Below, piece after piece: positions 1 to 26,472 of a DNA stretch of 64,000 nucleotides. Position numbers and translations under genes: made by a program. The notes beneath the pieces were generated by a model that worked only from the letters and a program-made list of their open reading frames with translations, did not search any database and was not told the origin of the DNA. Within the stretch, counting starts at the first letter, position 1. Each line of letters begins with the position of its first letter. Source of the DNA: Rebecca billardiae RCC1528 (lineage: Eukaryota; Protista; Haptophyta); the NCBI GenBank assembly GCA_965240325.2, contig OZ251254.1, positions 799,843 to 863,842 on the forward strand, in the 5' to 3' direction.

Positions 1-1400
1 CCTCGCAGCTCCCACTGGGGACGCTCGGCCGAAAACATCTTCCGCATGGCGCGGAGCGCATGGGCCGCGCGCGCCAAATCCAACGCCGGCGCGGACATCG
101 TGAGAGGATTCCCTAAGGGGGTTTTCGCCCGATTCGCGATTGCTGCCCTCGTCGTCTCGCGTGCAGGTCGAACGGGGCCCAAATCGACCCGTTTGATGCG
201 GTACGCTCGGCGCGTCGACACGATCGTGCGACTTGGGGCGATCCTCGCCCGACGTGCACGTCGAACGCTCGCACCGGCCATAGCATCAGACGCTGCGCAC
301 GATGGCCGCCTCGCGCGATCCACCGCCGCGCGTCGAGCTCGGTGCAGAAAGGCCCTCATCACGAGGTGTCTCGCGGGCGGGAAGCGCCATCGCACGCACG
401 GGACGCAAGATTTGGCGCGGCCTTCTGAACTCGATCGCCGGAATCCGCGCACCGGACTCAGTCCTCGCTCGCGGTCCGGTCCCTCAGCCGAAGCCCACGT
501 CCGGCCTGCATGGCGTCGACGGTGACCGATGCGACGGAAGCGCAGCGCCACGGCGTACGACGCGCAGCGGACGCACCTCCCGGGTCTGTCGCCGTGGTAG
601 CAACCGCGTCATCGCGAGTTGGCGACCCTCGCCGCAGCGCGACACAGACAAGCCCGTGATGCCATCCGCAGAGAGATGAATCGTCGAGCATGCAACATCG
701 CCGCGCCATCCTCGTCCATGGCGCAGGCGCTGCGGGACGAGGCGGAAGTCGTCACGCCGGTGACGGATGCGCTGCGATTCGTGTGCCCGCGTGAGCAGCG
801 CTTGCCCACTCTCGATCGCGAGTGGCACACGCTGTCGCTGTGCGCACAGCTCCTCGTGCCGCCGAGCACACGAGCGCCAGACCTGTCGAAGATGCGAAGA
901 GCGACGACCGCGTGAACGTCAACGCGCTCGTGCTCAGCGTGGCGGCCGTGTACGACGTCAACGCGACCTGCGCCGAGCCCATCATGCCTGGAGCGGACAT
1001 CGGCAAGCATCCTCGCGACGACCGCTCTCGGCTGGCAGGAGGACATGCACATGATCTACTCTGGCGGCTTCGTCGGCGGCGAGGCGCTCGATTACGCCAT
1101 CGCGGTCGACATGCGGCACATACAGCGCGTACCCGCGCTCGCGCGGAGCAACGGGCTACCCGCCCCGCCCCGCGTGCTGCACATTCCCTCGTGGGTGTGG
1201 GGCCTCGCTGATGCGCATAAGAGTACAGACTGAGACGTGTGACACGTCGGGGAGCCAACTTCACGTGTCACTGGTCCTTGCACTCGACTGTCCGTCACCC
1301 ACGGCCACGAGCGAATGTGGAAGGACGCGAACCCGCAGAGGATACATTGCGACAGCACTGGCACGGCCCGCCGACCCCCCCGCCCGCCAGGGCACAGTTT
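1..1400 (+). mobile_element. Hairpin-ended Ulp1 element, copy 1 (diverged short subfamily; 5' end outside window)
   Basis: Homologous to the other copies; ends with ACGGCCCGCCGACCCCCCCGCCCGCCAGGGCACAGTTT at 1400; closest to 27720-29245. Confidence 0.85.
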
Positions 1401-1415
1401 ATATAGTATCATTCA

Positions 1416-3619
1416 ATGGCGGGCCGTAGGTCCGCCCCTTGTAGTGCCCGGGAAAAAGATAAGAAAAAAGAAAAAGAAAAAAGAAAATCGCCTCGCAAAG
1501 AAAAGAAAATCGCCTCCCTCACTGCCGGGTCGCTTCGCTCACTACCGGGCGCCCTCGCAGCTCCCACTGGAGACGCTCGGCCGAAAACATCAGACGCATG
1601 GCGCGGAGCGCGTGGGCGGCGCACGCCAAATCCAACGCCGGCGGGGACATCGTGAGAAGACTCCCGAGGGGGGTTTTCGCCCGATTCGCGATTGCTGCCC
1701 TCGTCGTCTCGCGTGCAGGTCGAACGGGGGCCAAAGTCGACCAGTTTGGAAGTACGCTCGGCGCGTCGACACGATCGTGCGACCTGGGGCGGTCCTCGCC
1801 CGACTTGCACGTCGAGCGCTCGCACGAGCCATAGTATTAAGCGCTGCGCACGACAACCACCTCGCGCGATCCACCGTCGCGCGTCGGGCTCGGTGCGGAA
1901 AGGCCCTCATCACGAGGCGTCTCGCGGGCGGGAAGCGCCATCGCACGCGAAGCAAGCTTTGGCGCGGCCTTCTGAACTCGATCGCCGGAAACGGCGCACC
2001 GGACTGTCGCGTGCCACAACTTCTCAAAGCCGGGCGCATGCAAATCCGTTTGCTACAGCTGTACCAGTTCCCGGCCAAGCCGAAGGGCCGGCCCTTGTCC
2101 CGGCGATCATCTTTCGCGATCGCGGCCAAAGATCGCTCTCAGCTCGGCGCTCGCGGTCCCTCACAGCCGAAAGCCCACGTCCGGCCTTCAGCATGGCGTC
2201 GACGGTGACCAATGCGACGGAGGCGCAGCGCAAAGCGGCGTACGAGGCGCAGCGAACGCAGCTGCCGTGTCTGTCGCCGTGGCAGGAACCGCGTCTTGGC
2301 GAGTCGGCGGCCCTCGTCGCACAGCGCTACAGTATGACCGATCCCAGAGGCGCATCCGCCACGAGCTGAAACGCCGAGCGTGCAACATTGTCGCCCCATC
2401 CTCCACCATGTCACGAGCGCTGCGGGACGAGGCCGACGTCGTGAAGTCAGTGGCACATGCGCTGCGCTTCCTGTGCCTGCTCGAGCAGCGCGTGCCCACC
2501 CTCGATCGCGAGTGGCACACGCTCTCGCACTGCGCGCGCGCGCACCGCCCGGACAGCTCCTGATACCGCCGAACGTGCGGGTGCCGGACCTGTCGCGCGA
2601 AGCGGCGAGCGCCGACGAGCGCTTGGACCTGGACGCGTTGTTGCGCAGCGTGGCGGCCGTGCACGACGCCGACGCGACCTTCGCCGAGCCCATCGTGCCC
2701 GGAGCGGACATCGGCATCCTCGCGACACACGATTTCAGCTGGCGGCAGGAGGAGATGCTGTCGCGTTATCCGTACAGCGCCGAGATTACGCGGGCTCTGC
2801 GATCCATGGCGAGCTTGTGACTTGGGGCGGCGACTCGCGCAGCAGTTTGGCCGCTCGATGTACGAGTTCGCGTCCGGAGGAGTACGCGCGGCATGCAGGC
2901 TGCCGCCAGTGGGTACTGGCTACGAGTCCAAGCCCGCATGACCCTCACATCTCGAGTCTGCACCCTGCCGTTCGCTGTGTCAAAGCAGCCGCAACGAACA
3001 AGCGTCGTTGAGTGTCGATTGGCTGCGCGAGCGCGGTCTCGCCCCGCCCAACCCAAGTGTGTGCGAGTGAGCATGTGTCTTGAGCATGTGGCGTGCGTTG
3101 ACGCCATCCGCGACGGCCGACATGGCCATGGAGCGCCCGCATCACTCGCCTGCACCGTGCCCTTCATAGCCTACGGGAAGCTCCGCAAATCTGTTGATTT
3201 TGCTCTTTTTTGCCCGTTGGAGTCATCTTCTTCGCTTGGTTCTTAGTGCACTGAAAACCCTATTTTAAAGAATGAATTTTAGCGCGCGCGGGCGGCAGCG
3301 GAGCGCAACCAACCCGCGGAGTCGGGAGTGTCCGAAGGAGATCTCCGAGACGCTAAATGTGAGCCAATTCTTGTCGCCTGCGCACCAACCTTGCGCCCGG
3401 GACCGACCATTAAAGTTGAGTGAGTCTCCCGTGAGTCTCCCGGCGCTGTACGGTTATTATTCGTCAGTGAGTCAGGTAGCTCACCATCATCTGTGTGTCG
3501 CATTGTTATTCGTCATCCTGCCCGTCAAACCGCTAAATAAAAGGCGCGAACCCGCTGGGGAAATATTGCGACAGCACTGGCACGGCCCGCCGACCCCCCC
3601 GCCCGCCAGGGCAGAGTTT
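1416..3619 (+). mobile_element. Hairpin-ended Ulp1 element, copy 2 (internally deleted, interrupted by a MITE)
   Basis: Starts ATGGCGGGCCGTAGGTCCGCC at 1416, ends GGGCAGAGTTT at 3619; colinear with 7256-8762 once 2770-3453 is removed. Confidence 0.9.
2770..3453. mobile_element. Non-autonomous TIR element (MITE), piggyBac-like ends, 4-bp TTAT TSD
   Basis: Perfect 13-bp TIR CCGTACAGCGCCG/CGGCGCTGTACGG; TTAT at 2766-2769 and 3454-3457; empty site GCGTTATTATTCG present in sister copies. Confidence 0.9.
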
Positions 3620-4360
3620 AATATATGGCGGGCCGTAGGTCCGCCCCTTGTAGTGCCCGGGAAAAAGATAAGAAAAATAAAAGGAAAAAAGAAAATCGCC
3701 TCGCAGAGAAAAGAAAATCGCCTCGCTCACTGCCGGGTCGCTTCGCTCACTACCGGGCGCCCTCGCAGCTCCCACTGGAGACGCTCGGCCGAAAACATCA
3801 GACGGATGGCGCGGAGCGCATGGGCCGCGCGCGCCAAATCCAACGCCGGCGCGGACATCGTGAGAGGACTCCCGAGGGGGGTTTTCGCCCGATTCGCGAT
3901 TGCTGCCCTCGTCGTCTCGCGTGCAGGTCGAACGGGGGCCAAAGTCGACGCGTTTGGAGGCACACTCGGCGCGTCGACACGATCGTGCGACCTGGGGCGG
4001 TCCTCGCCCGACTTGCACGTTGAGCGCTTGCACGGGCCATAGCATCAAGCGCTGCGCACGACAACCACCTCGCGCGATCCACCGTCGCGCGTCGGGCTCG
4101 GTGCGGAAACGCATTCATCACGAGGTGTCTCGCGGGCGGGAAGCGCCATCGCACGCGACGCAAGCTTTGGCGCGGCCTTCTGAACACCATAACCGGAATG
4201 CACACACCGGACTGTCGTCGCGTGCCCCTGTTGGCAAGGTCGGGCGCATGCAAATCCGTTTGCTACGGTCGGTGGTGTTCCAGAGCAAGCGCTCGTCTTT
4301 CGCGCTCGCGAGCTCGCGGCCAAAGATCGCTCGGCGCTCGGGGGCCCACGTCCGGCCTGC

Positions 4361-6712
4361 ATGGCGTCGACGGTGACCAATGCGACGGAGGGGCAGCGCA
4401 AAGCGGCGTACGACGCGCACCGCACCTCCCGGGTTTGCAGCCGTGGCAGGAACCGCGTCGTGGCGAGTCGGCGGCCCTCGTCGCAGCGCGCTATCACAAA
4501 TCCCAGGTGCGCATCTGCGACGAGCTGAAACGCCGAGCGTGCAAGATCGCCGCGCCATCCTGGTCCATGGCACGGGCGCTGCGGGACGAGGCCGACGTCG
4601 TGAAGCCAGTGGCACATGCGCTGCGCTTCGTGTGCCTGCTCGAGCAGCGCGTGCCCACCGTCGATCGCGAGTGGCACACGCTCTCGCACTGCGCGCGCGT
4701 ACAACGCCAACAGCTCCTGATACCGCCGAACGTGCGTGTGCCGGACCTGTCGCGCGGAGCGGCGAGCGCCGACGAGCGCTTGGACCTGGACGCGCTGTTG
4801 CGCAGCGTGGCGGCCGTGCACGACGCCGACGCGACCTTCGCCGAGCCCATCGTGCCCGGAGAGGACATTGGCATCCTCGCGACACACGATCTCAGCTGGC
4901 GCCACGAGGAAATGCTCACGATCTCCTCTGGCGGATTCGTCGGCGGCGAGGCGCTCGACTACGTCATCGCGGTCGAGATGCGGCACATGCAGCGCGTACG
5001 CGAGCTCGCGCGAAGCCACGGGCTGCCCGTCCCGCCCCGCGTGCTGCACGTTCCCTCGTGGGTGTGGACCTTGCTCATGGGCGCGGGCGTGTACGCGTGG
5101 GAGAAGGTGGCCGACATCTTTGCGCTCTTCGACCTGAACGAGTACGACGTGCTCTCCTTCATCATCAACCAGGACGGCAACCACTGGGCGCAGGGGGTCG
5201 TGGACTTGCGCCGCGAGATCATCGAGTACCGCGAGCCCCTGGGCGGAGGCGACATGATCGAGTTCGTCTCGAACGTGCAGCTGCTGCTCGCCGACGCGCA
5301 CGAGGCCCAGCAGCAGCGCACACCGCGCACATGCGCGCAGCGCGACCCCTCCACGTGGCGCGTGTTCGAGCGCGCGCGCGAGCTGCCGTTGACGATGGCG
5401 CGGCAGGTGCCGGGCACGGTGCACTGCGCGGTGCTCGTCTTCGCGTACGTCCTCGACACCGTGCGAGGCCACGCGCCGTGCGGCATGAGCCAGCCCTTCG
5501 ACCCCAAGGAGTGGCGGCGCTTGATGCTACTCACGGCGCTCACGGGCAAGTCTTTTGCCGACGTGGCAGGGACGTGCGCGCAGCCCGACGCGGTGGCGAC
5601 GTGTGTCAAAGGCGCACGCGAGTCGGCGCGCTCGCATCCGTCGCCGCATATCGCGCAACGCGCCTCCGACCCCGCGCTCGCCGCGGAGACCAACGCCGCG
5701 GACGCGACAGCGAGCCCAGCCGCCCCCATCGCCGGGCTCCCAGCCGTTGCCGACGCCATGCGCGTGGACATGGAGGAGTCGTGCGACGCGCTCGATGACG
5801 CCGTCGCGTCGAACCGCGGCACGGCGCCGCCGCGGCACTCGCTCGCAGGCGCCAGCGCACGGCTCGGCGCCATCCGCCCCGCATCCCACGCCGAGCGGCG
5901 CAGCGCCCGTGGGCGCCTTGCAGCCGGGCGCGCCGCCGCGCGCCGACGACCACGTCGCCGAGGAGCCGCTGAGCGACGACCAGGCCGACGCCACCGGCGT
6001 GACCAGCATGGCGGCGCCGCCACACTCGCGCGTGCTGCGCTCGCAGACGTCGGCGCGCGACTCGGCGCTTTCCAGACCGCACCCCACGCCGAGCGGCGCC
6101 GCCCCCTTGGCCGCCTCGCAGCCCGGCGCGCCGCCGCCCACCGACGGCCACCTGGTCGGCGACCCGATGAGCGACGACGAGGCCGACGCCACCGGCGCGA
6201 CGGGCATCCCGCCGCCGACTCCGGACTTCGACCCGTCGCAGCACGTGCAGGGGATGATCCACGCGAACACGCACTCGTGCGCAGCGATGCTCACCTTCAG
6301 CCGCGGCGAGGAGAAGCACGCCGTTGGCATGTGCACCGTGTGCCTGCAGGTGCGCAACATTGGCCACGACTCCGGCGCCGATCTGAGCGCACGCCCAGGG
6401 TTCAACACGGTCATCGCCGCGCCGTGGGACTGCCAGCCGCGCGCGCAGCGCTATCCGGGCGCGCCCAAGTCGCGCGTGATGTGCAAGATCTGCATGGCGC
6501 TGAACACCAGCGCGGCGCGGCGCCGCACGCCGGACAACAACGAGCTCAAGGCACACCCCTACTCGGGCTTCTCCAGCCCCGCCGGCGACATGTCCAGCGA
6601 CCTCCACCACAACAACATGCACTTCCTGCCCGTGTCCGAGTACCTGCTGCCGTGCACCGAGTTCGAGCTGCAGCTGCTGGGCAAGTACGCGTGCGCCGCC
6701 ACCTACGATTTT
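4361..6712 (+). pseudogene. Transposon-borne Ulp1/SENP-like (clan CE) cysteine protease fused to Cys-rich (CxC-like) domain; frameshifted and truncated
   Basis: Motifs IINQDGNHWAQGVVDL, EYREPLG, RQVPGTVHCAVLVF; then CTVC, CKIC, FLPVSEYLLPCTEFELQLL; 4-bp deletion near 4425 (vs 18078) and 11-bp deletion near 5841 shift the frame. Confidence 0.75.
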
Positions 6713-6784
6713 AATATAAAGACCGGGCCCATTACACTGATTTCAAATAATATAAAGACCGGGCCCATTACACTGATTTCAAAT
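6713..6784 (+). repeat. 36-bp tandem duplication at the truncation point of the ORF (also at ~14275-14346)
   Basis: AATATAAAGACCGGGCCCATTACACTGATTTCAAAT x2, followed by (GAGAGACA)3. Confidence 0.9.
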
Positions 6785-7255
6785 AATAATAACCGTTAGA
6801 AATCAACATAGAGAGACAGAGAGACAGAGAGACAGAAATCGGTAGGATGCACTGACTTCCAGACGACCTGAACAAATAATGAATCAGGACATCACACTCC
6901 GCCACAACTTGAACTGTTTTCGTGTTTAGCTCCAAGGACAAACCGTCACCGTCAGGCGCACACGGGCACGCCGCCGTCGCACGCCAATCAGTTGGCAGTG
7001 CGTGCGCGCAGTCGAAGGCTCGGCACGATGACGAGTAGCACAGTGGGTGCAGGAATACACGCGCAATCACACTGTCGCTGAGCTCGCACCAGAGTCATCT
7101 GTCGCGTTATTATTCGTCAGTGAGTCGGGTAGCTCACAATCATCTTGGTATGATGTCGCATTGTTATTCGTAGTCATCCTGCCCGTCAAACCGCTATAAA
7201 TAAAAGGCGCGAACCCGCTGGGGAAATATTGCGACAGCACTGGCACGGCCCGCCG

Positions 7256-8762
7256 AACTCTGCCCTGGCGGGCGGGGGGGGTCGGCGGGCCGTGCCAGTG
7301 CTGTCGCAATATTTCCCCAGCGGGTTCGCGCCTTTTATTTAGCGGTTTGACGGGCAGGATGACGAATAACAATGCGACACACAGATGATGGTGAGCTACG
7401 ACCTGACTCACTGACGAATAATAACGCGACAGCATCTCCTCCTGCCGCCAGCTGAGATCGTGTGTCGCGAGGATGCCGATGTCCGCTCCGGGCACGATGG
7501 GCTCGGCGAAGGTCGCGTCGGCGTCGTGCACGGCCGCCACGCTGCGCAACAACGCGTCCAGGTCCAAGCGCTCGTCGGCGCTCGCCGCTTCGCGCGACAG
7601 GTCCGGCACCCACACGTTCGGCGGTATCAGGAGCTGTCGGCGGTGCGCGCGCGCGCAGTGCGAGAGCGTGTGCCACTCGCGATCGAGGGTGGGCACGCGC
7701 TGCTCGAGCAGGCACAGGAAGCGCAGGGCATGTGCCACTGGCTTCACGACGTCGGCCTCGTCCCGCAGCGCTCGTGACATGGTGGAGGATGGGGCGACAA
7801 TGTTGCACGCTCGGCGTTTCAGCTCGTGGCGGATGCGCCTCTGGGATCGGTCATACTGTAGCGCTGTGCGACGAGGGCCGCCGACTCGCCAAGACGCGGT
7901 TCCTGCCACGGCGACAGACACGGCAGCTGCGTTCGCTGCGCCTCGTACGCCGCTTTGCGCTGCGCCTCCGTCGCATTGGTCACCGTCGACGCCATGCTTA
8001 GAAGGCCGGACGTGGGCTTTCGGCTGTGAGGGACCGCGAGCGCCGAGCGATCTTTGGCCGCGATCGCGAAAGATGATCGCCGGGACAAGGGCCGGCCCTT
8101 CCCGTTCGGCTTGGCCGGGAACTGGTACAGCTGTAGCAAACGGATTTGCATGCGCCCGGCTTTGAGAAGTTGTGGCACGCGACAGTCCGGTGCGCCGTTT
8201 CCGGCGATCGAGTTCAGAAGGCAGCGCCAAAGCTTGCGTCGCGTGCGATGGCGCTTCCCGCCCGCGAGACGCCTCGTGATGAGGGCCTTTCCGCACCGAG
8301 CCCGACGCGCGACGGTGGATCGCGCGAGGTGGTTGTCGTGCGCAGCGCTTAATACTATGGCTCGTGCGAGCGCTCGACGTGCAAGTCGGGCGAGGACCGC
8401 CCCAGGTCGCACGATCGTGTCGACGCGCCGAGCGTACTTCCAAACTGGTCGACTTTGGCCCCCGTTCGACCTGCACGCGAGACGACGAGGGCAGCAATCG
8501 CGAATCGGGCGAAAACCCCCCTCGGGAGTCCTCTCACGATGTCCCCGCCGGCGTTGGATTTGGCGCGCGCCGCCCACGCGCTCCGCGCCATGCGTCTGAT
8601 GTTTTCGGCCGAGCGTCTCCAGTGGGAGCTGCGAGGGCGCCCGGTAGTGAGCGAAGCGACCCGGCAGTGAGGGAGGCGATTTTCTTTTCTTTGCGAGGCG
8701 ATTTTCTTTTTTCCTTTTCTTTTTTCTTATCTTTTTCCCGGGCACTACAAGGGGCGGACCTA
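7256..8762 (-). mobile_element. Hairpin-ended Ulp1 element, copy 4
   Basis: Reverse complement of copy 2 without the MITE; 5' end cut in the hairpin loop (GGCGGACCT/A). Confidence 0.9.
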
Positions 8763-9860
8763 ACTCTGCCCTGGCGGGCGGGGGGGTCGGCGGGCCGTGC
8801 CAGTGCTGTCGCAATATTTCCCCAGCGGGTTCGCGCCTTTTATTTAGCGGTTTGACGGGCAGGATGACGAATAACAATGCGACAGGGCTGGAGGCTTCGG
8901 CCGCCAGCCTGATCACCCGGAGCCCGTTATAAAGGGGAATTTAAAAAACACAGATGATGGTGAGCTACCTGACTCACTGACGAATAATAACGCGACAGCA
9001 TCTCCTCCTGCCGCCAGCTGAAATCGTGTGTCGCGAGGATGCCGATGTCCGCTCCGGGCACGATGGGCTCGGCGAAGGTCGCGTCGGCGTCGTGCACGGC
9101 CGCCACGCTGCGCACCAACGCGTCCAGGTCCAAGCGCTCGTCGGCGCTCGCCGCTTCGCGCGACAGGTCCGGCACCCGCACGTTCGGCGGTATCAGGAGC
9201 TGTCGGCGGTGCGCGCGCGCGCAGTGCGAGAGCGTGTGCCACTCGCGATCGAGGGTGGGCACGCGCTGCTCGAGCAGGCACAGGAAGCGCAGCGCATGTG
9301 CCACTGGCTTCACGACGTCGGCCTCGTCCCGCAGCGCTCGTGACATGGTGGAGGATGGGGCGACAATGTTGCACGCTCGGCGTTTCAGCTCGTGGCGGAT
9401 GCGCCTCTGGGATCGGTCATACTGTAGCGCTGTGCGACGAGGGCCGCCGACTCGCCAAGACGCGGTTCCTGCCACGGCGACAGACACGGCAGCTGCGTTC
9501 GCTGCGCCTCGTACGCCGCTTTGCGCTGCGCCTCCGTCGCATTGGTCACCGTCGACGCCATGCTGAAGGCCGGACGTGGGCTTTCGGCTGTGAGGGACCG
9601 CGAGCGCCGAGCTGAGAGCGATCTTTGGCCGCGATCGCGAAAGATGATCGCCGGGACAAGGGCCGGCCCTTCGGCTTGGCCGGGAACTGGTACAGCTGTA
9701 GCAAACGGATTTGCATGCGCCCGGCTTTGAGAAGTTGTGGCACGCGACAGTCCGGTGCGCCGTTTCCGGCGATCGAGTTCAGAAGGCCGCGCCAAAGCTT
9801 GCTTCGCGTGCGATGGCGCTTCCCGCCCGCGAGACGCCTCGTGATGAGGGCCTTTCCGCA
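8762..9860 (-). mobile_element. Hairpin-ended Ulp1 element, copy 5 (5'-truncated)
   Basis: 3' terminus AACTCTGCCCTGGCGGG at 8762; homology ends at 9860 before filler AATATATTAT. Confidence 0.85.
8885..8948 (+). mobile_element. 64-bp insertion with stem-loop and A-tail
   Basis: Absent from sister copies (GACA|CACAGATG at ~11761); GGCTGGAGGC-TTCG-GCCGCCAGCC hairpin; ends TTTAAAAAA. Confidence 0.75.
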
Positions 9861-9870
9861 AATATATTAT

Positions 9871-11640
9871 AAACTCAGCCCTGGCGGGCGGGGGGGTCGG
9901 CGGGCCGTGCCAGTGCTGTCGCAATATTTCCCCAGCGGGTTCGCGCCTTTATTTATAGCGGTTTGACGGGCAGGATGACTACGAATAATAACAATGCGAC
10001 ATCATACCGAGATGATTGTGAGCTACCCGACTCACTGACGAATAATAACGCGACAGATGACTCTGGTGCGAGCTCAGCGACAGTGTGATTGCGCGTGTAT
10101 TCCTGCACCCACTGTGATGCTACTCGTCATCGTGCCGAGCCGCAAAGATGTCGGCCACCTTCTCCCACGCGTACACGCCCGCGCCCATGAGCAAGGTCCA
10201 CACCCACGAGGGAACGTGCAGCACGCGGGGCGGGGCGAACAGCCCGTTGCTCCGCGCGAGTTCGCGTACGCGCTGCATGTGCCGCATCTCGACGGCGATG
10301 ACGTAGTCGAGCGCCTCGCCGCCGACGAATCCGCCAGAGGAGATCGTGAGCATGTCCTCCTGCCGCCAGCTGAGATCGTGTGTTGCGAGAATGCCAATGT
10401 CCGCTCCGGGCACGATGGGCTCGGCGAAGGTCGCGTCGGCGTCGTGCACGGCCGCCACGCTGCGCAACAGCGCGTCCAGGTCCACGCGCTCGTCGGCGCT
10501 CGCCGTTCCGCGCGACAGGTCCGGCACTCGCACGTTCGGCGGTATTCAGGAGCTGTTGGCGGTGTACGCGCGCGCAGTGCGAGAGCGTGTGCCACTCGCG
10601 ATCAACGGTGGGCACGCGCTGCTCGAGCAGGCACACGAAGCGCAGCGCATGCGTCACCGGCTTCACGACGTTGGCCTCCTCCCGCAGCGCCCGTGCCATG
10701 GTGGAGGATGGCGCGGCGATCTTGCACGCTCGGCGACTCATTTCTCTGCGAACGAGCGCTTTGGCTCGGTCATAGCGCGCTGTCGCCTGCGTCGCCGACT
10801 CGCGAAGACGCGGTTCTTTCCACGGCTGCAACCCCGGGAGGTGCGTGCGGTGCGCGTCGTACGCCGCTTTGCGCTGCGCCTCCGTCGCATTGGCCACCGT
10901 CGACGCCATGCAGGCCGGGCGTGGGTCCTCGAGCGCCGAGCGATCTTTGGCCGCGAGCTCGCGAGCGCGAAAGATGATCGCTGGTCAGGAGTCCTGTGCG
11001 GTAGCAAACGGATTTGCATGCGCCCGACCTTGCCAACCGGGGCACGCGACAGTCCGGTGTGTGGATTCCGGTTATGGTGTTCAGAAGGCCGCGCCAAATC
11101 TTGCGTCGCGTGCGATGGCGCTTCCCGCCCGCGAGACGCCTCGTGATGAGGGCCGTTCCGCACCGAGCCCGACGCGCGACGGTGAATCGAGCGAGGCGGC
11201 CATCGTGCGCAGCGCTTGATGCTATGGCCGGTGCGAGCTTTCGACGTGCACGTCAGGCGAGGATCGCCCCAGGTCGCACGATCGTGTCGACGCGCCGAGC
11301 GTACCGCTCCAAACGCGTCGATTTAGCCCCCGTTCGACCTGCACGCGAGACGACGAGGGCAGCAATCGCGAATCGGGCGAAAACACCCCTCGGGAGTCTT
11401 CTCACGATGTCCGCTCCGGCGTTGGATTCGGCGCGCGCGGCCCACGCGCTCCGCGCCATCCAGGACTCTCTTTCGGCCGAGCGTCCCCAGTGGGAGCTGC
11501 GAGGGCGCCCGGTAGTGAGCGAAGCAACCCGGCAGTGAGCGAGGCGATTTTCTTTTCTTTGCGAGGCGATTTTCTTTTTTCCTTTTCTTTTTCTTATCCT
11601 TTTCCCGGGCACTACAAGGGGCGGACCTACGGCCCGCCAT
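9871..11640 (-). mobile_element. Hairpin-ended Ulp1 element, copy 6 (both termini intact, different internal deletion)
   Basis: AAACTCAGCCCTGG at 9871 to CCTACGGCCCGCCAT at 11640; deletion junction at ~10141. Confidence 0.9.
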
Positions 11641-12139
11641 AAACTCTGCCCTGGCGGGCGGGGGGGTCGGCGGGCCGTGCCAGTGCTGTCGCAATATTTC
11701 CCCAGCGGGTTCGCGCCTTTTATTTAGCGGTTTGACGGGCAGGATGACGAATAACAATGCGACACACAGATGATGGTGAGCTACCTGACTCACTGACGAA
11801 TAATAACGCGACAGCATCTCCTCCTGCCGCCAGCTGAAATCGTGTGTCGCGAGGATGCCGATGTCCGCTCCGGGCACGATGGGCTCGGCGAAGGTCGCGT
11901 CAGCGTCGTGCACGGCCGCCACGCTGCGCAACAACGCGTCCAGGTCCAAGCGCTCGTCGGCGCTCGCCGCTTCGCGCGACAGGTCCGGCACCCGCACGTT
12001 CGGCGGTATCAGGAGCTGTCGGCGGTGCGCGCGCGCGCAGTGCGAGAGCGTGTGCCACTCGCGATCGAGGGTGGGCACGCGCTGCTCGAGCAGGCACAGG
12101 AAGCGCAGCGCATGTGCCACTGGCTTCACGACGTCGGCC
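11641..12139 (-). mobile_element. Hairpin-ended Ulp1 element, copy 7 (5'-truncated)
   Basis: Abuts copy 6 with no spacer (GGCCCGCCAT|AAACTCTGCC). Confidence 0.85.
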
Positions 12140-12514
12140 AAAACTCAGCCCTGGCGGGCGGGGGGGTCGGCGGGCCGTGCCAGTGCTGTCGCAATATTTC
12201 CCCAGCGGGTTCGCGCCTTTTATTTATAGCGGTTTGACGGGCAGGATGACTACGAATAACAATGCGACATCATACCAAGATGATTGTGAGCTACCCGACT
12301 CACTGACGAATAATAACGCGACAGATGACTCTGGTGCGAGCTCAGCGACAGTGTGATTGCGCGTGTATTCCTGCACCCACTGTGCTACTCGTCATCGTGC
12401 CGAGCCTTCGACTGCGCGCACGCACTGCCAACTGATTGGCGTGCGACGGCGGCGTGCCCGTGTGCGCCTGACGGTGACGGTTTGTCCTTGGAGCTAAACA
12501 CGAAAACAGTTCAA

Positions 12515-14274
12515 GCTCGACTACGTCATCGCGGTCGAGATGCGGCACATGCAGCGCGTACGCGAGCTCGCGCGAAGCCACGGGCTGCCCGTCCCGCCCC
12601 GCGTGCTGCACGTTCCCTCGTGGGTGTGGACCTTGCTCATGGGCGCGGGCGTGTACGCGTGGGAGAAGGTGGCCGACATCTTTGCGCTCTTCGACCTGAA
12701 CGAGTACGACGTGCTCTCCTTCATCATCAACCAGGACGGCAACCACTGGGCGCAGGGGGTCGTGGACTTGCGCCGCGAGATCATCGAGTACCGCGAGCCC
12801 CTGGGCGGAGGCGACATGATCGAGTTCGTCTCGAACGTGCAGCTGCTGCTCGCCGACGCGCACGAGGCCCAGCAGCAGCGCACACCGCGCACATGCGCGC
12901 AGCGCGACCCCTCCACGTGGCGCGTGTTCGAGCGCGCGCGCGAGCTGCCGTTGACGATGGCGCGGCAGGTGCCGGGCACGGTGCACTGCGCGGTGCTCGT
13001 CTTCGCGTACGTCCTCGACACCGTGCGAGGCCACGCGCCGTGCGGCATGAGCCAGCCCTTCGACCCCAAGGAGTGGCGGCGCTTGATGCTACTCACGGCG
13101 CTCACGGGCAAGTCTTTTGCCGACGTGGCAGGGACGTGCGCGCAGCCCGACGCGATGGCGACGTGTGTCAAAGGCGCACGCGAGTCGGCGCGCTCGCATC
13201 CGTCGCCGCATATCGCGCAACGCGCCTCCGACCCCGCGCTCGCCGCGGAGACCAACGCCGCGGACGCGACAGCGAGCCCAGCCGCCCCCATCGCCGGGCT
13301 CCCAGCCGTTGCCGACGCCATGCGCGTGGACATGGAGGAGTCGTGCGACGCGCTCGATGACGCCGTCGCGTCGAACCGCGGCACGGCGCCGCCGCGGCAC
13401 TCGCTCGCAGGCGCCAGCGCACGGCTCGGCGCCATCCGCCCCGCATCCCACGCCGAGCGGCGCAGCGCCCGTGGGCGCCTTGCAGCCGGGCGCGCCGCCG
13501 CGCGCCGACGACCACGTCGCCGAGGAGCCGCTGAGCGACGACCAGGCCGACGCCACCGGCGTGACCAGCATGGCGGCGCCGCCACACTCGCGCGTGCTGC
13601 GCTCGCAGACGTCGGCGCGCGACTCGGCGCTTTCCAGACCGCACCCCACGCCGAGCGGCGCCGCCCCCTTGGCCGCCTCGCAGCCCGGCGCGCCGCCGCC
13701 CACCGACGGCCACCTGGTCGGCGACCCGATGAGCGACGACGAGGCCGACGCCACCGGCGCGACGGGCATCCCGCCGCCGACTCCGGACTTCGACCCGTCG
13801 CAGCACGTGCAGGGGATGATCCACGCGAACACGCACTCGTGCGCAGCGATGCTCACCTTCAGCCGCGGCGAGGAGAAGCACGCCGTTGGCATGTGCACCG
13901 TGTGCCTGCAGGTGCGCAACATTGGCCACGACTCCGGCGCCGATCTGAGCGCACGCCCAGGGTTCAACACGGTCATCGCCGCGCCGTGGGACTGCCAGCC
14001 GCGCGCGCAGCGCTATCCGGGCGCGCCCAAGTCGCGCGTGATGTGCAAGATCTGCATGGCGCTGAACACCAGCGCGGCGCGGCGCCGCACGCCGGACAAC
14101 AACGAGCTCAAGGCACACCCCTACTCGGGCTTCTCCAGCCCCGCCGGCGACATGTCCAGCGACCTCCACCACAACAACATGCACTTCCTGCCCGTGTCCG
14201 AGTACCTGCTGCCGTGCACCGAGTTCGAGCTGCAGCTGCTGGGCAAGTACGCGTGCGCCGCCACCTACGATTTT
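12515..14274 (+). pseudogene. Second copy of the Ulp1-like protease/Cys-cluster gene fragment
   Basis: Near-identical to ~4953-6712 including the same 11-bp frameshift. Confidence 0.75.
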
Positions 14275-14652
14275 AATATAAAGACCGGGCCCATTACACT
14301 GATTTCAAATAATATAAAGACCGGGCCCATTACACTGATTTCAAATAATAATAACCGTTAGAAATCAACATAGAGAGACAGAGAGACAGAGAGACAGAAA
14401 TCGGTAGGATGCACGCACTGACTTCCAGACGACCTGAACAAATGAATCAGGACATCACACTCCGCCACAACTTGAACTGTTTTCGTGTTTAGCTCCAAGG
14501 ACAAACCGTCACCGTCAGGCGCACACGGGCACGCCGCCGTCGCACGCCAATCAGTTGGCAGTGCGTGCGCGCAGTCGAAGGCTCGGCACGATGACGAGTA
14601 GCACAGTGGGTGCAGGAATACACGCGCAATCACACTGTCGCTGAGCTCGCAC

Positions 14653-17060
14653 CAGACTGAGTCTAGGGGGTCCATGACAGCAGCCCACTGAATTGTGATT
14701 TTCGACAACCATGCGATTTAGGTGTCTGACGAGCGTGGCGCTTGCGGAGGCACCCACAAATATGTCCTGGAACCCAGCCCAGCCGTCAGAAGCACCCAAA
14801 ACCGACTCCGCGCGTCGTCGCGCGGTCGTGCGCGCACGCCAGCTGCGCCACTGTGTCACATACAGATTCAGCCAAACGTCAACGACTTGTTATGGCGGCT
14901 AAATGACGGTATGTCGTCGGACTTACTTATTCATAACCGTTGCAACCCGCCCCAACAAAATTAAGGTGGACTTGCTAAATTTTAGTAGGCACGATGAGTG
15001 CGCGTAGAGGTCGGTGAAAAACTACTCCAAGATCGAGCATGTTACCCACTTAATTAGAGACATGTACCCGTATATATGCACTTACCCACCCGTTCATTAT
15101 ACAATGCGGGTGCTGGGTTTTAAATATATATTCAGGGTGGTGTCAATATGGGGGTACCTTGTTCACTATTCGTGCTGGGTCATCCGAATAGGCCGCGTCG
15201 CCGCGCGGAGTGACGGCGGGCTCATGCCACCGTCAAACCAGCAGGCCCGGACGAACCTGATGTGGGCGGCGGGCTGCGTGCCGAAGCACACTACCAAGCG
15301 CACCTCTGAGCATGCCACCATCCCCATAGTCGTGAAGGAGTCCTCCGCCATCGACGCTTGCGTGCGCAGACTAGCAGTCATCGCCGCCGCCGAGCTTGCC
15401 GCGGCCGTTCGGCGACTTCCGTGCCCGTGCTCTGTGTCACCGGCGTCGTCGCCGTTCGTCGTACCCCAGCCCACGCGAGGCCGTCACCGGTCCACCGGTC
15501 CTGCGGCGGACTGCGCGCGCTTCGCCGCGCGCTCGCCCTCGAGCTCCGCCGCTCTCCTCTCGCGCTCGAACTGGACGCAGTCGGCAGCCATGGCAGCCCG
15601 CTCGGCCGCAGCGCGATCTGTGCCCCCCCGCGCGCTGCGCTCGGTTGCGTCGGCGCGCAAGCTGGCGCGCGCAGCGTCAGCGACGGCGCGCGCGGTCGCC
15701 TTGCGCGACGAGTCCAGCTCCACCTGCTGCTCCGTCAGGCGCACCTGCTGCTCCAAGATGACCGCGTGCTCAGCAGGAGTCACGCGCTGCTCGTGCAGCG
15801 GCACCTGCACGCGGCCTGCTGCGGACGCGCGCGGCGCGCCGGCGTCGGGGGGCGAGTAGAGGTCGCGGAAGGGGCAGCTGTCGTCGCCGGCGCCCAGCGA
15901 CGTGTCGTTGGCATCCAGCTCCGCCTTCCTCTCCGCCGCCGACGCGCCCTGCTTCCGGCTCAGGATGCGCTCCATGTCCTTGTTCTTGCCCTTCCACCAC
16001 CTGTGCACGGTCATCAGCCAGATGCCGATCACCTCCAGCAGCGGCGAGTCGTGGCGCGCCGAGATGCCGAGCGCATCCGCGCAGACGAGCGCGAGCGCAT
16101 TGGGCTTCTTCGTCCCACCGTCGCGCGCGGTCTGGGCGCACGCCGGGGTGAACACTCTGACCAACGGCTTGTGCTTCTTCAAGTTCTCGAGCATGAGGTC
16201 CATGAGCGTACGGAGGAGGTCGAGGAGCATGAAGTTGAGCACCGATGCGTACCGCGGGCGAAAGCCGGCCACGGGCCGACCGGCCAAGGGCTGCAGCACG
16301 TGGATGGCGCGCGCCGCCACCGCCGTCTCCTCGAGCTGCTGCGCGCTGACGTTGACGTCAGGCCGTAGCTCGGGCCTGCACGGTTGCACACAGCCGAGGC
16401 CGTCCGCGGAGGAGGCGAGCCCCTCGGCGGTGCCAGCGGGGACCTCGGGCGGGCTGCACACATCCATGGGCACGCGTGCATCATCATCTGCCGCGCCCTG
16501 GACCTCGTCATGCCCGGCACAGCGGTCCGCAAGTTGGTCGGCGGTAGCTGGCCCTTGCGGCAGAGGCGTCGCGGGCACGTCCGAGGGCGAGAAGGCAGCG
16601 TCGGGTGGGGAAGGAGACAGCGTCGAGTCGTTGCCGATGCCTATCCCACCGCGTTGCGCATGTTCGTCTCCGCGTTGCTCGCCTGTACGTGCTCCTAGGA
16701 CGCGCTCCTTGGTCGCGGGCAGCACACGTTGAGCACGCAGATTCAAATCATGAAGCACGAGCGTCGACCGGCCAGCGACTCCCACCGAGAGCCCGGTCCA
16801 CACGAAGCATGGCTACCTGTCCGCAGCCGCCCAGCCGCTCGGCGAGGCGCCTGCGCCGAGGTGGGCGCGCCCAACGGCGAGCGGACGGCCGTCGACGAGG
16901 GCCATCAGCCTCGCCGACCCGTTCAGAGCTCCGCTCCCGCGCCGGGGCCAGCCGAGCGCGGATTTGGAATCTGCCGATCGCGAAAACACGCCGAACAAGT
17001 TCTGAACAGGAAAAGAAAAGAAATCAAAAATCAATTTAATCTGATGGACCCCCTACAGTG
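14653..17060. mobile_element. CACTG-ended TIR element (CACTA/CMC-like), probable 2-bp AC TSD
   Basis: Interrupts host sequence GCACCAGAGTC; right end ATGGACCCCCTACAGTG; left end shares TAGGGGGTCCAT but has small insertions. Confidence 0.7.
15484..16803 (-). CDS. Cargo ORF of the CACTG element, unknown function (helical core plus C-terminal coiled coil); start uncertain
   Basis: 439-aa ORF with protein-like core (LNFMLLDLLRTLMDLMLENLKKHK...HRWWKGKNKDMERIL) and Ala/Glu/Arg-rich tail. Confidence 0.5.
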   Translation of the reverse strand: MWTGLSVGVAGRSTLVLHDLNLRAQRVLPATKERVLGARTGEQRGDEHAQRGGIGIGNDSTLSPSPPDAAFSPSDVPATPLPQGPATADQLADRCAGHDEVQGAADDDARVPMDVCSPPEVPAGTAEGLASSADGLGCVQPCRPELRPDVNVSAQQLEETAVAARAIHVLQPLAGRPVAGFRPRYASVLNFMLLDLLRTLMDLMLENLKKHKPLVRVFTPACAQTARDGGTKKPNALALVCADALGISARHDSPLLEVIGIWLMTVHRWWKGKNKDMERILSRKQGASAAERKAELDANDTSLGAGDDSCPFRDLYSPPDAGAPRASAAGRVQVPLHEQRVTPAEHAVILEQQVRLTEQQVELDSSRKATARAVADAARASLRADATERSARGGTDRAAAERAAMAADCVQFERERRAAELEGERAAKRAQSAAGPVDR

Positions 17061-17288
17061 ACCAGAGTCATCTGTCGCGTTATTATTCGTCAGTGAGTCG
17101 GGTAGCTCACAATCATCTTGGTATGATGTCGCATTGTTATTCGTAGTCATCCTGCCCGTCAAACCGCTATAAATAAAAGGCGCGACCCCGCTGGGGAAAT
17201 ATTGCGACACTGACAGCACTGGCACGGCCCGCCGACCCCCCCGCCCGCCAGGGCTGAGTTTATATAATATCCGCTCAGTGCTCAGTGA

Positions 17289-19395
17289 ATGGCGGGCCGT
17301 AGGTCCGCCCCTTGTAGTGCCCGGGAAAAAGATAAGAAAAAGAAAAAGAAAAAAGAAAATCGCCTCGCAGAGAAAAGAAAATCGCCTCGCTCACTGCCGG
17401 GTCGCTTCGCTCACTACCGGGCGCCCTCGCAGCTCCCACTGGAGACGCTCGGCCGAAAACATCAGACGGATGGCGCGGAGCGCATGGGCCGCGCGCGCCA
17501 AATCCAACGCCGGCGCGGACATCGTGAGAGGACTCCCGAGGGGGGTTTTCGCCCGATTCGCGATTGCTGCCGCCTCGTCGTCTCGCGTGCAGGTCGAACG
17601 GGGGCCAAAGTCGACGCGTTTGGAGGCACGCTCGGCGCGTCGACACGATCGTGCGACCTGGGGCGGTCCTCGCCCGACTTGCACGTTGAGCGCTTGCACG
17701 GGCCATAGCATCAAGCGCTGCGCACGACAACCACCTCGCGCGATCCACCGTCGCGCGTCGGGCTCGGTGCGGAAACGCATTCATCACGAGGTGTCTCGCG
17801 GGCGGGAAGCGCCATCGCACGCGACGCAAGCTTTGGCGCGGCCTTCTGAACACCATAACCGGAATGCACACACCGGACTGTCGTCGCGTGCCCCTGTTGG
17901 CAAGGTCGGGCGCATGCAAATCCGTTTGCTACGGTCGGTGGTGTTCCAGAGCAAGCGCTCATCTTTCGCGCTCGCGAGCTCGCGGCCAAAGATCGCTCGG
18001 CGCTCGGGGGCCCACGTCCGGCCTGCATGGCGTCGACGGTGACCGATGCGACGGAGGGGCAGCGCAAAGCGGCGTACGACGCGCACCGCACGCACCTCCC
18101 AGGTTTGCAGCCGTGGCAGGAACCGCGTCGTGGCGAGTTGGCGGCCCTCGTCGCAGCGCGCTATCACAAATCCCAGGTGCGCATCTGCGACGAGCTGAAA
18201 CGCTGTCCACGCGCATGGCGTCGGCAACGGCTGGGAGCCCGGCGATGGGGGCGGCTGGGCTCGCTGTCGCGTCCGCGGCGTTGGTCTCCGCGGCGAGCGC
18301 GGGGTCGGAGGCGCGTTGCGCGATATGCGGCGACGGATGCGAGCGCGCCGACTCGCGTGCGCCTTCGACACACGTCGCCATCGCGTCGGGCTGCGCGCAC
18401 GTCCCTGCCACGTCGGCAAAAGACTTGCCCGTGAGCGCCGTGAGTAGCATCAAGCGCCGCCACTCCTTGGGGTCGAAGGGCTGGCTCATGCCGCACGGCG
18501 CGTGGCCTCGCACGGTGTCGAGGACGTACGCGAAGACGAGCACCGCGCAGTGCACCGTGCCCGGCACCTGCCGCGCCATCGTCAACGGCAGCTCGCGCGC
18601 GCGCTCGAACACGCGCCACGTGGAGGGGTCGCGCTGCGCGCATGTGCGCGGTGTGCGCTGCTGCTGGGCCTCGTGCGCGTCGGCGAGCAGCAGCTGCACG
18701 TTCGAGACGAACTCGATCATGTCGCCTCCGCCCAGGGGCTCGCGGTACTCGATGATCTCGCGGCGCAAGTCCACGACCCCCTGCGCCCAGTGGTTGCCGT
18801 CCTGGTTGATGATGAAGGAGAGCACGTCGTACTCGTTCAGGTCGAAGAGCGCAAAGATGTCGGCCACCTTCTCCCACGCGTACACGCCCGCGCCCATGAG
18901 CAAGGTCCACACCCACGAGGGAACGTGCAGCACGCGGGGCGGGACGGGCAGCCAGTGGCTTCGCGCGAGCTCGCGTACGCGCTGCATGTGCCGCATCTCG
19001 ACCGCGATGACGTAGTCGAGCTTGAACTGTTTTCGTGTTTAGCTCCAAGGACAAACCGTCACCGTCAGGCGCACACGGGCACGCCGCCGTCGCACGCCAA
19101 TCAGTTGGCAGTGCGTGCGCGCAGTCGAAGGCTCGGCACGATGACGACTAGCACAGTGGGTGCAGGAATACACGCGCAATCACACTGTCGCTGAGCTCGC
19201 ACCAGAGTCATCTGTTGCGTTATTATTCGTCAGTGAGTCGGGTAGCTCACAATCATCTTGGTATGATGTCGCATTGTTATTCGTAGTCATCCTGCCCGTC
19301 AAACCGCTATAAATAAAAGGCGCGAACCCGCTGGGGAAATATTGCGACAGCACTGGCACGGCCCGCCGACCCCCCCGCCCGCCAGGGCTGAGTTT
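17289..19395 (+). mobile_element. Hairpin-ended Ulp1 element, copy 9, with inverted interior (18204-19020)
   Basis: 5' terminus 17289, 3' terminus ~19395; protease segment on minus strand; same inversion junction as 12515. Confidence 0.85.
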
Positions 19396-19590
19396 TCTAA
19401 ATTCTTAAAGGCTATATCAGTATCACTCAGACCGGGGACCGGTGATGTCACTCAGATGCTGCTGTGTAATCCGTTACTCCGCCGCCGCACTCACGGTACA
19501 GTAAATCCGTACAGTTTCAGACTAAGCAGAATAAGAGATTCCGGCACACAGCTCAGGCAGGCGAGATTGTGCTCAGCATCATGACAATCA

Positions 19591-26385: not shown

Positions 26386-26404
26386 GTGACTCGATATATA
26401 TATC

Positions 26405-26470
<66 letters not shown>
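26318..26470. repeat. Adjacent (CT)n and (AT)n microsatellites
   Basis: Direct inspection. Confidence 0.95.

Positions 26471-26472
<2 letters not shown>

Follow-up and report, generated by a model that had tools for sequence, protein, structure and literature searches.

Helitron2 transposons were defined by asymmetric terminal repeats and hairpins in Helitron-1_CRe and CRe-1/2/3 of Chlamydomonas reinhardtii (Bao and Jurka 2013, PMC3627910). FoHeli1-5 of Fusarium oxysporum share such repeats with hairpins and insert after ...AT and before T (Chellapan et al. 2016, PMC5148889). That report attributes FoHeli copies with several short 5' termini to self-insertion, and describes an insertion of one element 2 bp upstream of the 5' end of another, tandem triplets in Metarhizium and joined-end (circle) products (PMC5148889). 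Adjacent, co-oriented canonical Helitrons in maize are sequence-divergent and were therefore read as consecutive insertions (Du et al. 2008, PMC2267711). Head-to-tail Helitrons of Myotis (Pritham and Feschotte 2007, as described in PMC2267711) and centromeric arrays of truncated copies (Xiong et al. 2016, as cited in PMC5148889 and PMC12001565) extend the list. Head-to-tail Helitrons, 5' truncation with an overabundance of 3' ends, and duplicated 5' termini are thus all published (PMC2267711, PMC3627910, PMC5148889), and stacking of this kind is a known Helitron habit, so that neither a new system nor a new mechanism is described here.

We analyzed a window of 64,000 nucleotides from contig OZ251254.1 of the haptophyte alga Rebecca billardiae RCC1528, in which a 19-kb array consists of one Helitron2-type family stacked mostly head to tail, a pattern that is real and non-random. 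The family is assigned to the Helitron2-type rolling-circle transposons by its termini and RepHel features. As in the Chlamydomonas elements (PMC3627910), the first base is T, a short asymmetric inverted repeat lies 0-2 nt from the 5' end and forms a 5' hairpin, the target appears to be T-rich, apparently with no regular target duplication, the RepHel gene lies on the same strand, and 5' truncation is frequent while nearly all 3' ends are intact ('one-ended transposition'). The family differs from them in its haptophyte host, in a target that looks like A|T or T|T within TA-rich islands rather than TTTT|T/C, in truncated copies without the 7-19-bp duplications reported for CRe-1/2/3, and in a RepHel that bears an N-terminal Ulp1-like protease. 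Whereas the stacking cases of FoHeli are anecdotal, we count 28 junctions with a measured orientation bias, and find joints at a look-alike site and in a hairpin loop. The maize and Myotis elements are Helitron1 (TC...CTRR ends, A|T target) with perfect junctions, whereas here at least a TA spacer precedes a true 5' end; for these and the centromeric arrays, as here, the debate is between rolling-circle tandem repeats and insertion beside a resident copy. The haptophyte family is clean, with ends defined to the nucleotide, and offers a natural data set on that question.

The bacterial insertion sequences IS91 and ISCR also move by rolling circle, have no helicase fusion and target GTTC/CTTG. 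They are compared here by way of working, not membership: as far as they are treated in PMC3627910, they too use an HUH Rep transposase with distinct origin and terminator ends, and undergo one-ended transposition that leaves one fixed and one variable end.

Termini of the family and layout of the array

Elements were delimited as TGGCGGGCCGT...AGTT. The 5' end is T followed by GGCGGGCCGT, a 10-nt inverted repeat that pairs with a stretch farther downstream to give an 8-bp hairpin (-7.6 kcal/mol, z -2.1). At the other terminus, the partner repeat ACGGCCCGCC lies 27-28 nt before the AGTT 3' end and is followed by a 4-bp stem, GCCC-GCCA-GGGC, which is the Helitron2 arrangement of a repeat ~20-30 nt from the 3' end and directly upstream of a stem. 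The 3' end alone folded no better than its shuffles (z -0.75); when 3' and 5' ends are joined, an 11-bp stem forms between the two repeats (-20 kcal/mol, z -2.8). These features agree with the Helitron2 definition given in PMC3627910. Genome-wide the family counts ~330 copies, of which non-autonomous 1.4-2.2-kb forms are the majority and four are autonomous.

Positions 1-19394 of the window contain nine intact 3' ends (CCGCCAGGGCNNAGTT), against a chance expectation of 0.06. The leftmost belongs to copy A (1-1399, plus strand), of the short ~1.5-kb non-autonomous type, whose 5' end lies left of the window and whose AGTT ends at 1399; it is 88% identical to a solitary short copy at 27721-29245 (minus strand), which has AT-rich flanks and a partly deleted 5' hairpin. 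The junction from 1399 to 1417 carries a 17-nt AT-rich spacer (1400-1416) and leads into copy B (1417-3618, plus), a full-length member of a young subfamily that contains a 684-bp MITE (2770-3453). From 3618 to 3626 the spacer is the 7-nt TAATATA (3619-3625). Copy C (3626-7255, plus) is a 3.6-kb long form that derives from the 9.4-kb autonomous element by internal deletion and retains the Ulp1-like part of the ORF; the terminal 27-28 nt of C are gone, cut right after the 3' subterminal repeat.

The next five units lie on the minus strand. Copy D (7256-8761), of B type, has its 5' end cut within the hairpin loop, with 11 nt lost, and copy E (8762-9860), also B-type, is 5'-truncated at B position 479. 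Eleven nucleotides of AT-rich filler (9861-9871) separate this truncated side, a copy interior, from the 3' end of copy Z (9872-11639), a full-length 1.77-kb element of C type without the 1.9-kb Ulp1 segment. The minus-strand junction from 11642 to 11639 has the 2-nt spacer TA and joins Z to copy W (11642-12139), B-type and 5'-truncated at B position 1016, whose interior is followed by TT (12140-12141) and by fragment V (12142-12515), the final 374 nt of a long-form copy. V is joined inverted, with 1 nt of microhomology, to copy U (12515-17260, plus), a long form from position 1329 through its 3' end that is interrupted by an unrelated 2.4-kb TIR element (14657-17060). A 29-nt spacer (17261-17289) then makes the junction from 17260 to 17290, where fragment T begins (17290-18203, plus; the initial 909 nt of a long-form copy). 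Within 18204-19394 lie fragment S (minus; long-form positions 2146-1329) and fragment R (plus; the final 374 nt), whose 3' end at 19394 closes the array, with an AT-rich flank beyond.

Part of this layout is secondary. Positions 12140-13332 and 19396-18204 form an inverted duplication of 1193 bp at 99.7% identity, and the 3' ends at 12142 and 19394, both inside it, therefore do not count as separate events. At 12515, 18203/4 and 19021 the sequence is broken by ordinary rearrangement joints, which show 0-1 nt of microhomology.

The nine junctions lie where a preliminary description of this DNA had placed them, with boundaries shifted by 1-2 nt (spacers of 17, 7, 2 and 29 nt instead of 15, 5, 0 and 27). 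Its observation of intact incoming 3' ends beside trimmed neighbors holds as well: all nine array 3' ends are AGTT, exact to the nucleotide, and four minus-strand copies have lost 11, 478, 1015 and ~3283 nt from their 5' ends. It had also argued against simple tandem duplication, and with good reason, because adjacent copies in the window differ in subfamily (78-93% identical) and in internal structure, with 1.5-kb, 2.2-kb and 3.6-kb forms side by side.

Spacers, orientation and the growth of the array

Among the 100 3' ends listed, the base after AGTT is T in 93, C in 4 and A in 3, and often opens a (TA)n run; at the other end, GGCGGG is always preceded by T, and that T usually by A. Every spacer has T as its first base and A as its last, a pattern that most single-copy flanks share. 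The AT-rich filler had been put down to non-templated repair, an explanation that finds no support here: solitary copies carry the same kind of T/TA-rich flank, so the spacers are most simply leftover AT-rich target DNA. No consistent target duplication was found across the flanks of 12 solitary copies, and a TA target-site duplication was dropped as inconsistent among solitary copies. From the copy flanks, T|Y and A|T readings of the insertion target are both compatible.

Across the genome, exact 3'-to-5' junctions with a spacer of up to ~30 nt number 28, against one tail-to-tail and one head-to-head arrangement, and 25:2 is left when three repeated junctions are removed (binomial p about 3e-6). 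Outside repeats, the window has one AT-rich island per ~2 kb (about 0.5 per kb), a density at which random co-occupancy is expected to yield ~1-5 pairs. The enrichment of self-termini that had been predicted for a genome-wide tabulation of 3' ends is thus borne out. For the first 100 5' ends, neighbors less than 3 kb apart are co-oriented in 18 cases and opposed in one; at 30-100 kb the ratio is 7:8.

Comparison of the copies also points to independent insertions. The young B-type subfamily comprises ~13 copies at least 96% identical genome-wide, four of them in the array, and in each of these four 0-7 nt separate the 3' end from a motif that resembles a 5' end. The similarity among B, D, E and W gives no support to local copying as such: copies 98-99% identical lie on at least six other contigs, which marks the B type as a young dispersed subfamily. 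Neighbors at C1:3866269, C16:81147 and C19:513589 likewise differ in subfamily and length; the independence of pairs was judged for the window pairs and, by coordinates, at these three loci of the 28 junctions.

We therefore favor, at a probability of roughly 60%, a reading in which the array grew mainly by separate, oriented and putatively Rep-guided insertions of different members beside resident ends, overlain by later events. Different family members would have inserted separately into the short AT-rich DNA that flanks the ends of resident copies, in an orientation nearly always shared with the resident, which would leave the order 3' end, T...A spacer, 5' end. The inverted segmental duplication, the MITE and the TIR-element insertion would be the later events.

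The strongest competitor, although rather improbable, is passive co-occupancy: rare T/TA-rich islands are preferred by the family, resident ends are not recognized, and the orientation bias arises later or regionally, either because inverted pairs (quasi-palindromes) are lost or because single-strand insertion follows the direction of replication or transcription. The flanks of solitary copies fit this proposal, being T/TA-rich and often (TA)n, and the spacers resemble them; AT islands are abundant, however, large (TA)n tracts nearby are empty (one of 90 bp lies 7 kb from the array), and shared islands are 5-20x more frequent than random expectation. Neighbors 3-30 kb apart are co-oriented 12:3 raw and, without the duplicated block, 8:3, which is not significant. 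Co-orientation possibly reaching ~25 kb would favor a regional strand bias over terminus recognition, yet none is left at 30-100 kb. The centers of inverted neighbors are all damaged (7255/6, 12515 and 19021), as if palindromes had been processed. Against this, the C and D arms are just 90.7% alike, so that strong palindrome instability is unexpected, and the C/D joint is broken on each side exactly at a functional boundary, on one side the AGTT terminus and on the other the repeat edge. The same low identity of the arms led to the rejection of a foldback origin for this tail-to-tail joint.

Improbable, too, is the production of whole arrays in one step, by rolling-circle read-through into concatemers or by unequal crossing-over between AT-rich flanks. 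Rolling-circle tandem arrays of Helitrons have been described, as cited in PMC12001565 and PMC5148889, and two triplets elsewhere in this genome have units with identical match scores and matching spacers, one on C3 (period 2127) and one on C5 (period 1538, with an identical 22-nt spacer); these triplets are true tandem duplications. The array in the window is built otherwise, since A/B, B/C and W/Z pair different subfamilies at 78-93% identity and no two spacers are alike, and coordinates and subfamily assignments show differing neighbors at C1:3866269, C16:81147 and C19:513589, too. Both routes, tandem duplication and insertion beside a resident copy, are thus seen in this genome, and oriented insertion probably dominates. 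Collapsed or chimeric assembly joins between dispersed copies are very improbable, even though contigs from a public run are short, stop at copy ends and bridge none of the junctions, since the 72-Mb assembly in 41 contigs suggests long reads, junctions of this type are found at 24 further loci, where the spacers differ, and the joins fall at exact element termini rather than at arbitrary points of homology.

Joints inside resident termini

Two joints of the array have no spacer. At 7255/7256 the minus-strand AGTT of copy D abuts CGGCGGGCCGT of copy C, which is the reverse complement of the 3' subterminal repeat of C and thereby a look-alike of a 5' end. At 8761/8762 the AGTT of copy E abuts AGGTCCGCC of copy D, inside the loop of the 5' hairpin. 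Under oriented insertion beside resident ends, these would be the clearest footprints of Rep joining. The HUH Rep would nick at the 5' repeat and hairpin that it recognizes on its own element and would act also at or near resident 5' ends, joining the incoming 3'-OH there on the same strand and hence in the same orientation. If the incoming strand is incomplete, host repair would seal its 5' side, at the cost of truncation and of small deletions in the target.

A genome-wide search found no other cryptic-site joint like these two, and wherever AGTT faces a true 5' end at a junction, a spacer of at least TA lies between them, which counts against a Rep that simply nicks at the boundary of the resident 5' end. 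The evidence that GGCGGGCCGT or its hairpin guides insertion is suggestive only: both zero-spacer joints lie exactly beside the motif and hint at Rep-guided joining, but both are unique to the window. In its specific form, with a Rep that homes to its own 5' repeat and hairpin, nicks no more than a few bases from a 5' end, be it resident or a look-alike, and links the incoming 3' end at that point on the same strand, the idea is tentative and somewhat unlikely. If the orientation bias does reflect recognition of resident ends by Rep, the family would be a good system for testing targeted integration by a eukaryotic HUH transposase, and recognition of this kind would help to explain how Helitron arrays and satellites start. 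Homing, if true, would turn the co-oriented, self-built arrays into a self-made safe harbor within a genome that is GC-rich and dense in genes. It would also open a direct path from a transposon to a satellite-like array, and integration by this eukaryotic HUH transposase would be directed by both sequence and structure.

The autonomous partner and its protein

The four autonomous copies (9.4-11.4 kb) have the same ends as the array copies, and two of them are 99.9% identical, so that the family has apparently been active recently. Each carries a single open frame (2736-2873 codons), which lies on the same strand and whose predicted protein combines a Ulp1 domain and an SF1 helicase with an HUH/YxxxY Rep. 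Pfam models for Ulp1 and the SF1 helicase matched the frame, and DUF6570 matched it weakly; the helicase P-loop (AAA_30 and AAA_19 at residues 2303-2429) is of the SF1 (Pif1-like) kind and lies C-terminal to Rep. Homologs of the Rep region were recovered by an exhaustive protein search; a word-based protein search and a sequence search against solved structures returned no match to it. In the homolog alignments, an H-x-H motif ('IHSH') and Y287/Y291/K294 (YxxxYxxK) of the 2873-codon frame of the C1 copy are invariant. The homologs of the autonomous protein carry DUF6570, Helitron_like_N (PF14214) and PIF1; PF14214 scored below significance on the autonomous protein itself. The AP-endonuclease (Exo_endo_phos) that is the criterion for a Helentron was absent from the Pfam scan of the whole frame.

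A tyrosine-recombinase (Crypton-like) or IS200/IS605-like element had been considered and was abandoned after the RepHel partner was found. Five large canonical Helitrons (PF14214) were rejected as partners, having different ends (5' ACGCACAACAC...) and proteins that share nothing detectable with the autonomous one. One of the five sits inside a copy of the Helitron2-type family.

Layout of the array and identity of its element

The genome (72 Mb, 41 contigs) is very GC-rich, and the first 19.4 kb of the window, with 60-70% GC versus 75-80% downstream, consist almost entirely of copies of a single repeat that starts (A)TGGCGGGCCGTAGGTCCGCC and ends ...ACGGCCCGCCGACCCCCCCGCCCGCCAGGGCNNAGTT. The interval 1-19394 contains nine of these 3' ends, compared with 0.06 in shuffles. 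Mapping against three reference copies gave the order of the array. On the forward strand lie copy A (1-1399), a 17-nt spacer, the full-length copy B (1417-3618), a 7-nt spacer and copy C (3626-7255), a long form without its last 27-28 nt. Reverse-strand copies follow: D (7256-8761) without its first 11 nt, the 5'-truncated E (8762-9860) and an 11-nt AT stretch, the full-length Z (9872-11639) and TA, the 5'-truncated W (11642-12139) and TT, and V, a fragment holding only the last 374 nt. Copy U (12515-17260, forward) has a foreign 2.4-kb element inside and a 29-nt spacer behind it, and the array ends with fragments T (forward, first 909 nt), S (reverse) and R (forward, 3' end at 19394). All junctions listed in the preliminary description were found in the sequence, and its observation holds: the AGTT 3' terminus is exact wherever it occurs and the 5' sides are variable. 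The element boundaries and the target dinucleotide can be drawn in two ways 1 nt apart, either as A|T with an element starting TGG or as T|T/C with one starting GG.

Through a 1.9-kb segment peculiar to the long form, four loci were traced on contigs other than that of the window, at which the family's 5' and 3' ends enclose 9.4-11.4 kb. Each contains a single open frame, 2736-2873 codons long, on the strand running from the 5' to the 3' end. The autonomous copies on contigs C1 and C10 are 99.9% identical across 9.28 kb, and copy C derives from the autonomous element by an internal deletion that spared the element's first 3079 nt and last 300-400 nt. Pfam matches in the frame comprise a Ulp1-like protease (residues 422-493), an SF1 helicase P-loop and, weakly, DUF6570. 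An exhaustive protein search returned 135 relatives, of which the long ones carry DUF6570, Helitron_like_N and PIF1, and the HUH and YxxxYxxK motifs are invariant in the alignments with relatives. Judged by these domains and motifs, the predicted product is a Helitron-type RepHel. A Helentron was ruled out, because the Pfam search of the frame found no endonuclease domain. The family's ends fit the Helitron2 group as defined in the literature by element ends (PMC3627910): the element starts with T, a 10-nt repeat placed 1 nt from the 5' end pairs with bases downstream of it to form a hairpin, and its partner repeat lies 27-28 nt from the 3' end and is followed by a small stem. When the joined 3'-5' form was folded, both repeats paired as an 11-bp stem, and the junction fell at the loop edge.

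Five PF14214-positive Helitrons of the genome belong to a different family. This second, unrelated family (L015+L020 at G000:C7:281221-289598, with sisters on C13, C23 and C33) measures 8.4-11.2 kb, has open frames of 2865-3640 codons and combines a shared 5' end (ACGCACAACACAC...) with variable 3' truncation; one member is nested within a copy of the array family (L018+L023). The motif CAAAGGACCATCAAA lies 3' of this family, and the autonomous copies of the array family on C16 and C10 (L036-L039) both adjoin it or its reverse complement. One possibility is that these elements insert next to another repeat, of which the motif would be the terminal hairpin.

Polarity of self-junctions

Genome-wide, about 334 5' ends of the family were counted, and its exact 3' ends number at least 171. 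A 3' end is followed by a 5' end within ~30 nt in 28 instances, 24 of them outside the window, and the equivalent tail-to-tail and head-to-head patterns occur once each; without three repeated junctions (the tandems on C3, C5 and C17) the ratio is 25:2 (p ~3e-6 versus 50:50). For the first 100 5' ends listed, the ratio of co-oriented to opposed neighbours is 18:1 at distances below 3 kb, 12:3 at 3-30 kb (8:3 without a duplicated block on C5) and 7:8 at 30-100 kb. AT-rich islands are common (~24 in 44 kb of non-repeat window), so random double occupancy by 330 copies would be expected to yield roughly 1-5 pairs. The excess and polarity of 3'-to-5' self-junctions are real.

Long (TA)n or TA-rich microsatellites lie in the 75-80% GC host DNA of the window, a 90-bp (TA)n tract at 26394-26484, which is one of the ~24 islands, and others at 35889-35942, 57214-57263 and 59700-59769; none of these four is occupied by the family, though it favours such sequence.

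The spacers do not call for the non-templated filler synthesis proposed in the preliminary description. Solitary copies are followed on their 3' side by T in 93 of the 100 listed and then by T/A-rich sequence, often (TA)n, and their 5' flank reads ...W-A ahead of TGG. All 28 spacers likewise begin with T, and 27 end with A ahead of the 5' T, the pattern that a new copy would leave on landing in the AT-rich remnant next to a resident one. The AT stretches at 9861-9871 and 12140-12141 would most simply be the 3' flanks of Z and V, beside which the 5'-truncated E and W were joined.

Tandem duplication and separate insertions are both present in the family. The triplets on C3 (period 2127; three units with identical match scores) and on C5 (period 1538; three units with identical match scores and a common 22-nt spacer) are, by their unit structure, true tandem amplifications. 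The array, as previously proposed, is not a simple tandem duplication: its neighbours differ in subfamily and architecture, no two spacers are alike, and identities are 78-90% for A and B, 90-93% for B and C and ~93% for W and Z. Pairs at C1:3866269, C16:81147 and C19:513589, compared by coordinates and subfamily, are also unlike. The young subfamily of copy B is scattered through the genome, copies 98-99% identical lying on C16, C18, C32, C10, C36 and C20, and four of its ~13 young copies (B, D, E and W) share the array. The 3' end of each lies 0-7 nt from a 5'-end-like motif, namely the true 5' ends of C and Z, the look-alike in C and the hairpin loop of D.

Joints at the 5' motif and a candidate mechanism

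Two joints have no spacer. In the one at 7255/6, D's AGTT is joined to CGGCGGGCCGT, which is C's 3' repeat in reverse complement, at a position equivalent to the boundary of a true 5' end (TGGCGGGCCGT); a foldback origin was excluded, because the arms are only 90.7% alike. In the one at 8761/2, E's AGTT adjoins AGGTCCGCC within the loop of D's hairpin, directly after GGCGGGCCGT. Few joints run into GC-rich interior, and two of these coincide exactly with edges of the 10-nt motif (chance <1e-3 by a rough estimate), a placement that fits transfer of the 3' end by Rep to a Rep-recognised site. No other such joint was found in the genome, and in none of its junctions is AGTT fused straight to a true 5' end, so guidance by the 5' motif or its hairpin, as first proposed, is kept here as a hypothesis at which these two joints hint. 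At C1:3183734 and C1:4468222 the opening 10-11 nt of the 5' end are duplicated, and on C5 and C8 there are pairs of 5' ends 26-58 nt apart; both observations point to the same hot spot and match the 'multiple 5' termini' of Fusarium Helitron2-like elements (PMC5148889).

We conclude that this is a Helitron2 family whose 3' termini are exact and whose 5' truncation varies, with AT-rich targets and co-oriented clustering at its own ends. In the mechanism we propose, Rep bound at, or nicking near, the resident 5' repeat and hairpin would supply the target strand, to which the incoming 3'-OH would be joined. The 5' end of a complete incoming strand would then be joined by the second tyrosine; an incomplete strand would be closed by host repair, leaving 5' truncation and small target deletions. 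Alternatively, RepHel unwinding a resident copy would expose the same strand of its AT-rich 3' flank as the target, with the same outcome.

The array adds no new kind of system. Adjacent head-to-tail Helitrons of unlike sequence in maize were explained by consecutive insertions, and perfect head-to-tail junctions in bat were interpreted as rolling-circle tandems (PMC2267711). Chlamydomonas Helitron2 elements show 5' truncation with nearly all 3' ends intact, termed 'one-ended transposition' (PMC3627910), fungi show self-insertion near 5' ends, tandem triplets and joined-end circles (PMC5148889), and Xenopus has arrays from Helitron2 elements (PMC12001565). New are the counts (28:1:1), the host group and the two unusual joints.

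Rearrangement and foreign insertions

The structure of the array is partly due to rearrangement rather than insertion, since 12140-13332 and 19396-18204 form a 1193-bp inverted duplication (99.7% identity) bracketing 4.9 kb of array, and ordinary breakpoints, sharing 0-1 nt of microhomology, account for the joints at 12515, 18203/4 and 19021. Such microhomology at breakpoints inside elements suggests a recent template-switch or end-joining event, not transposition. Outside the array, a 220-bp inverted repeat (21173-21390 and 21777-21997; 92% identity) encloses 390 bp.

The long form contains two adjoining 180-bp units, 81% identical, within the Ulp1-bearing open frame (5840-6217 and again 13402-13779), and three AT-rich motifs of 16-19 nt spaced ~35 nt apart (6707-6793); these motifs are free of family insertions. 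The 2.4-kb element interrupting U (14657-17060) has imperfect terminal inverted repeats with the core TAGGGGGTCCAT and an apparent 6-bp duplication, ACCAGA; a Pfam search of its ORFs gave no match. A 684-bp insertion in copy B (2770-3453) is bounded by perfect 12-bp terminal inverted repeats (CCGTACAGCGCC) and flanked by TTAT on either side. It is missing from the otherwise 97-99.5% identical D, E and W and resembles a MITE inserted at an AT-rich place within the Helitron.
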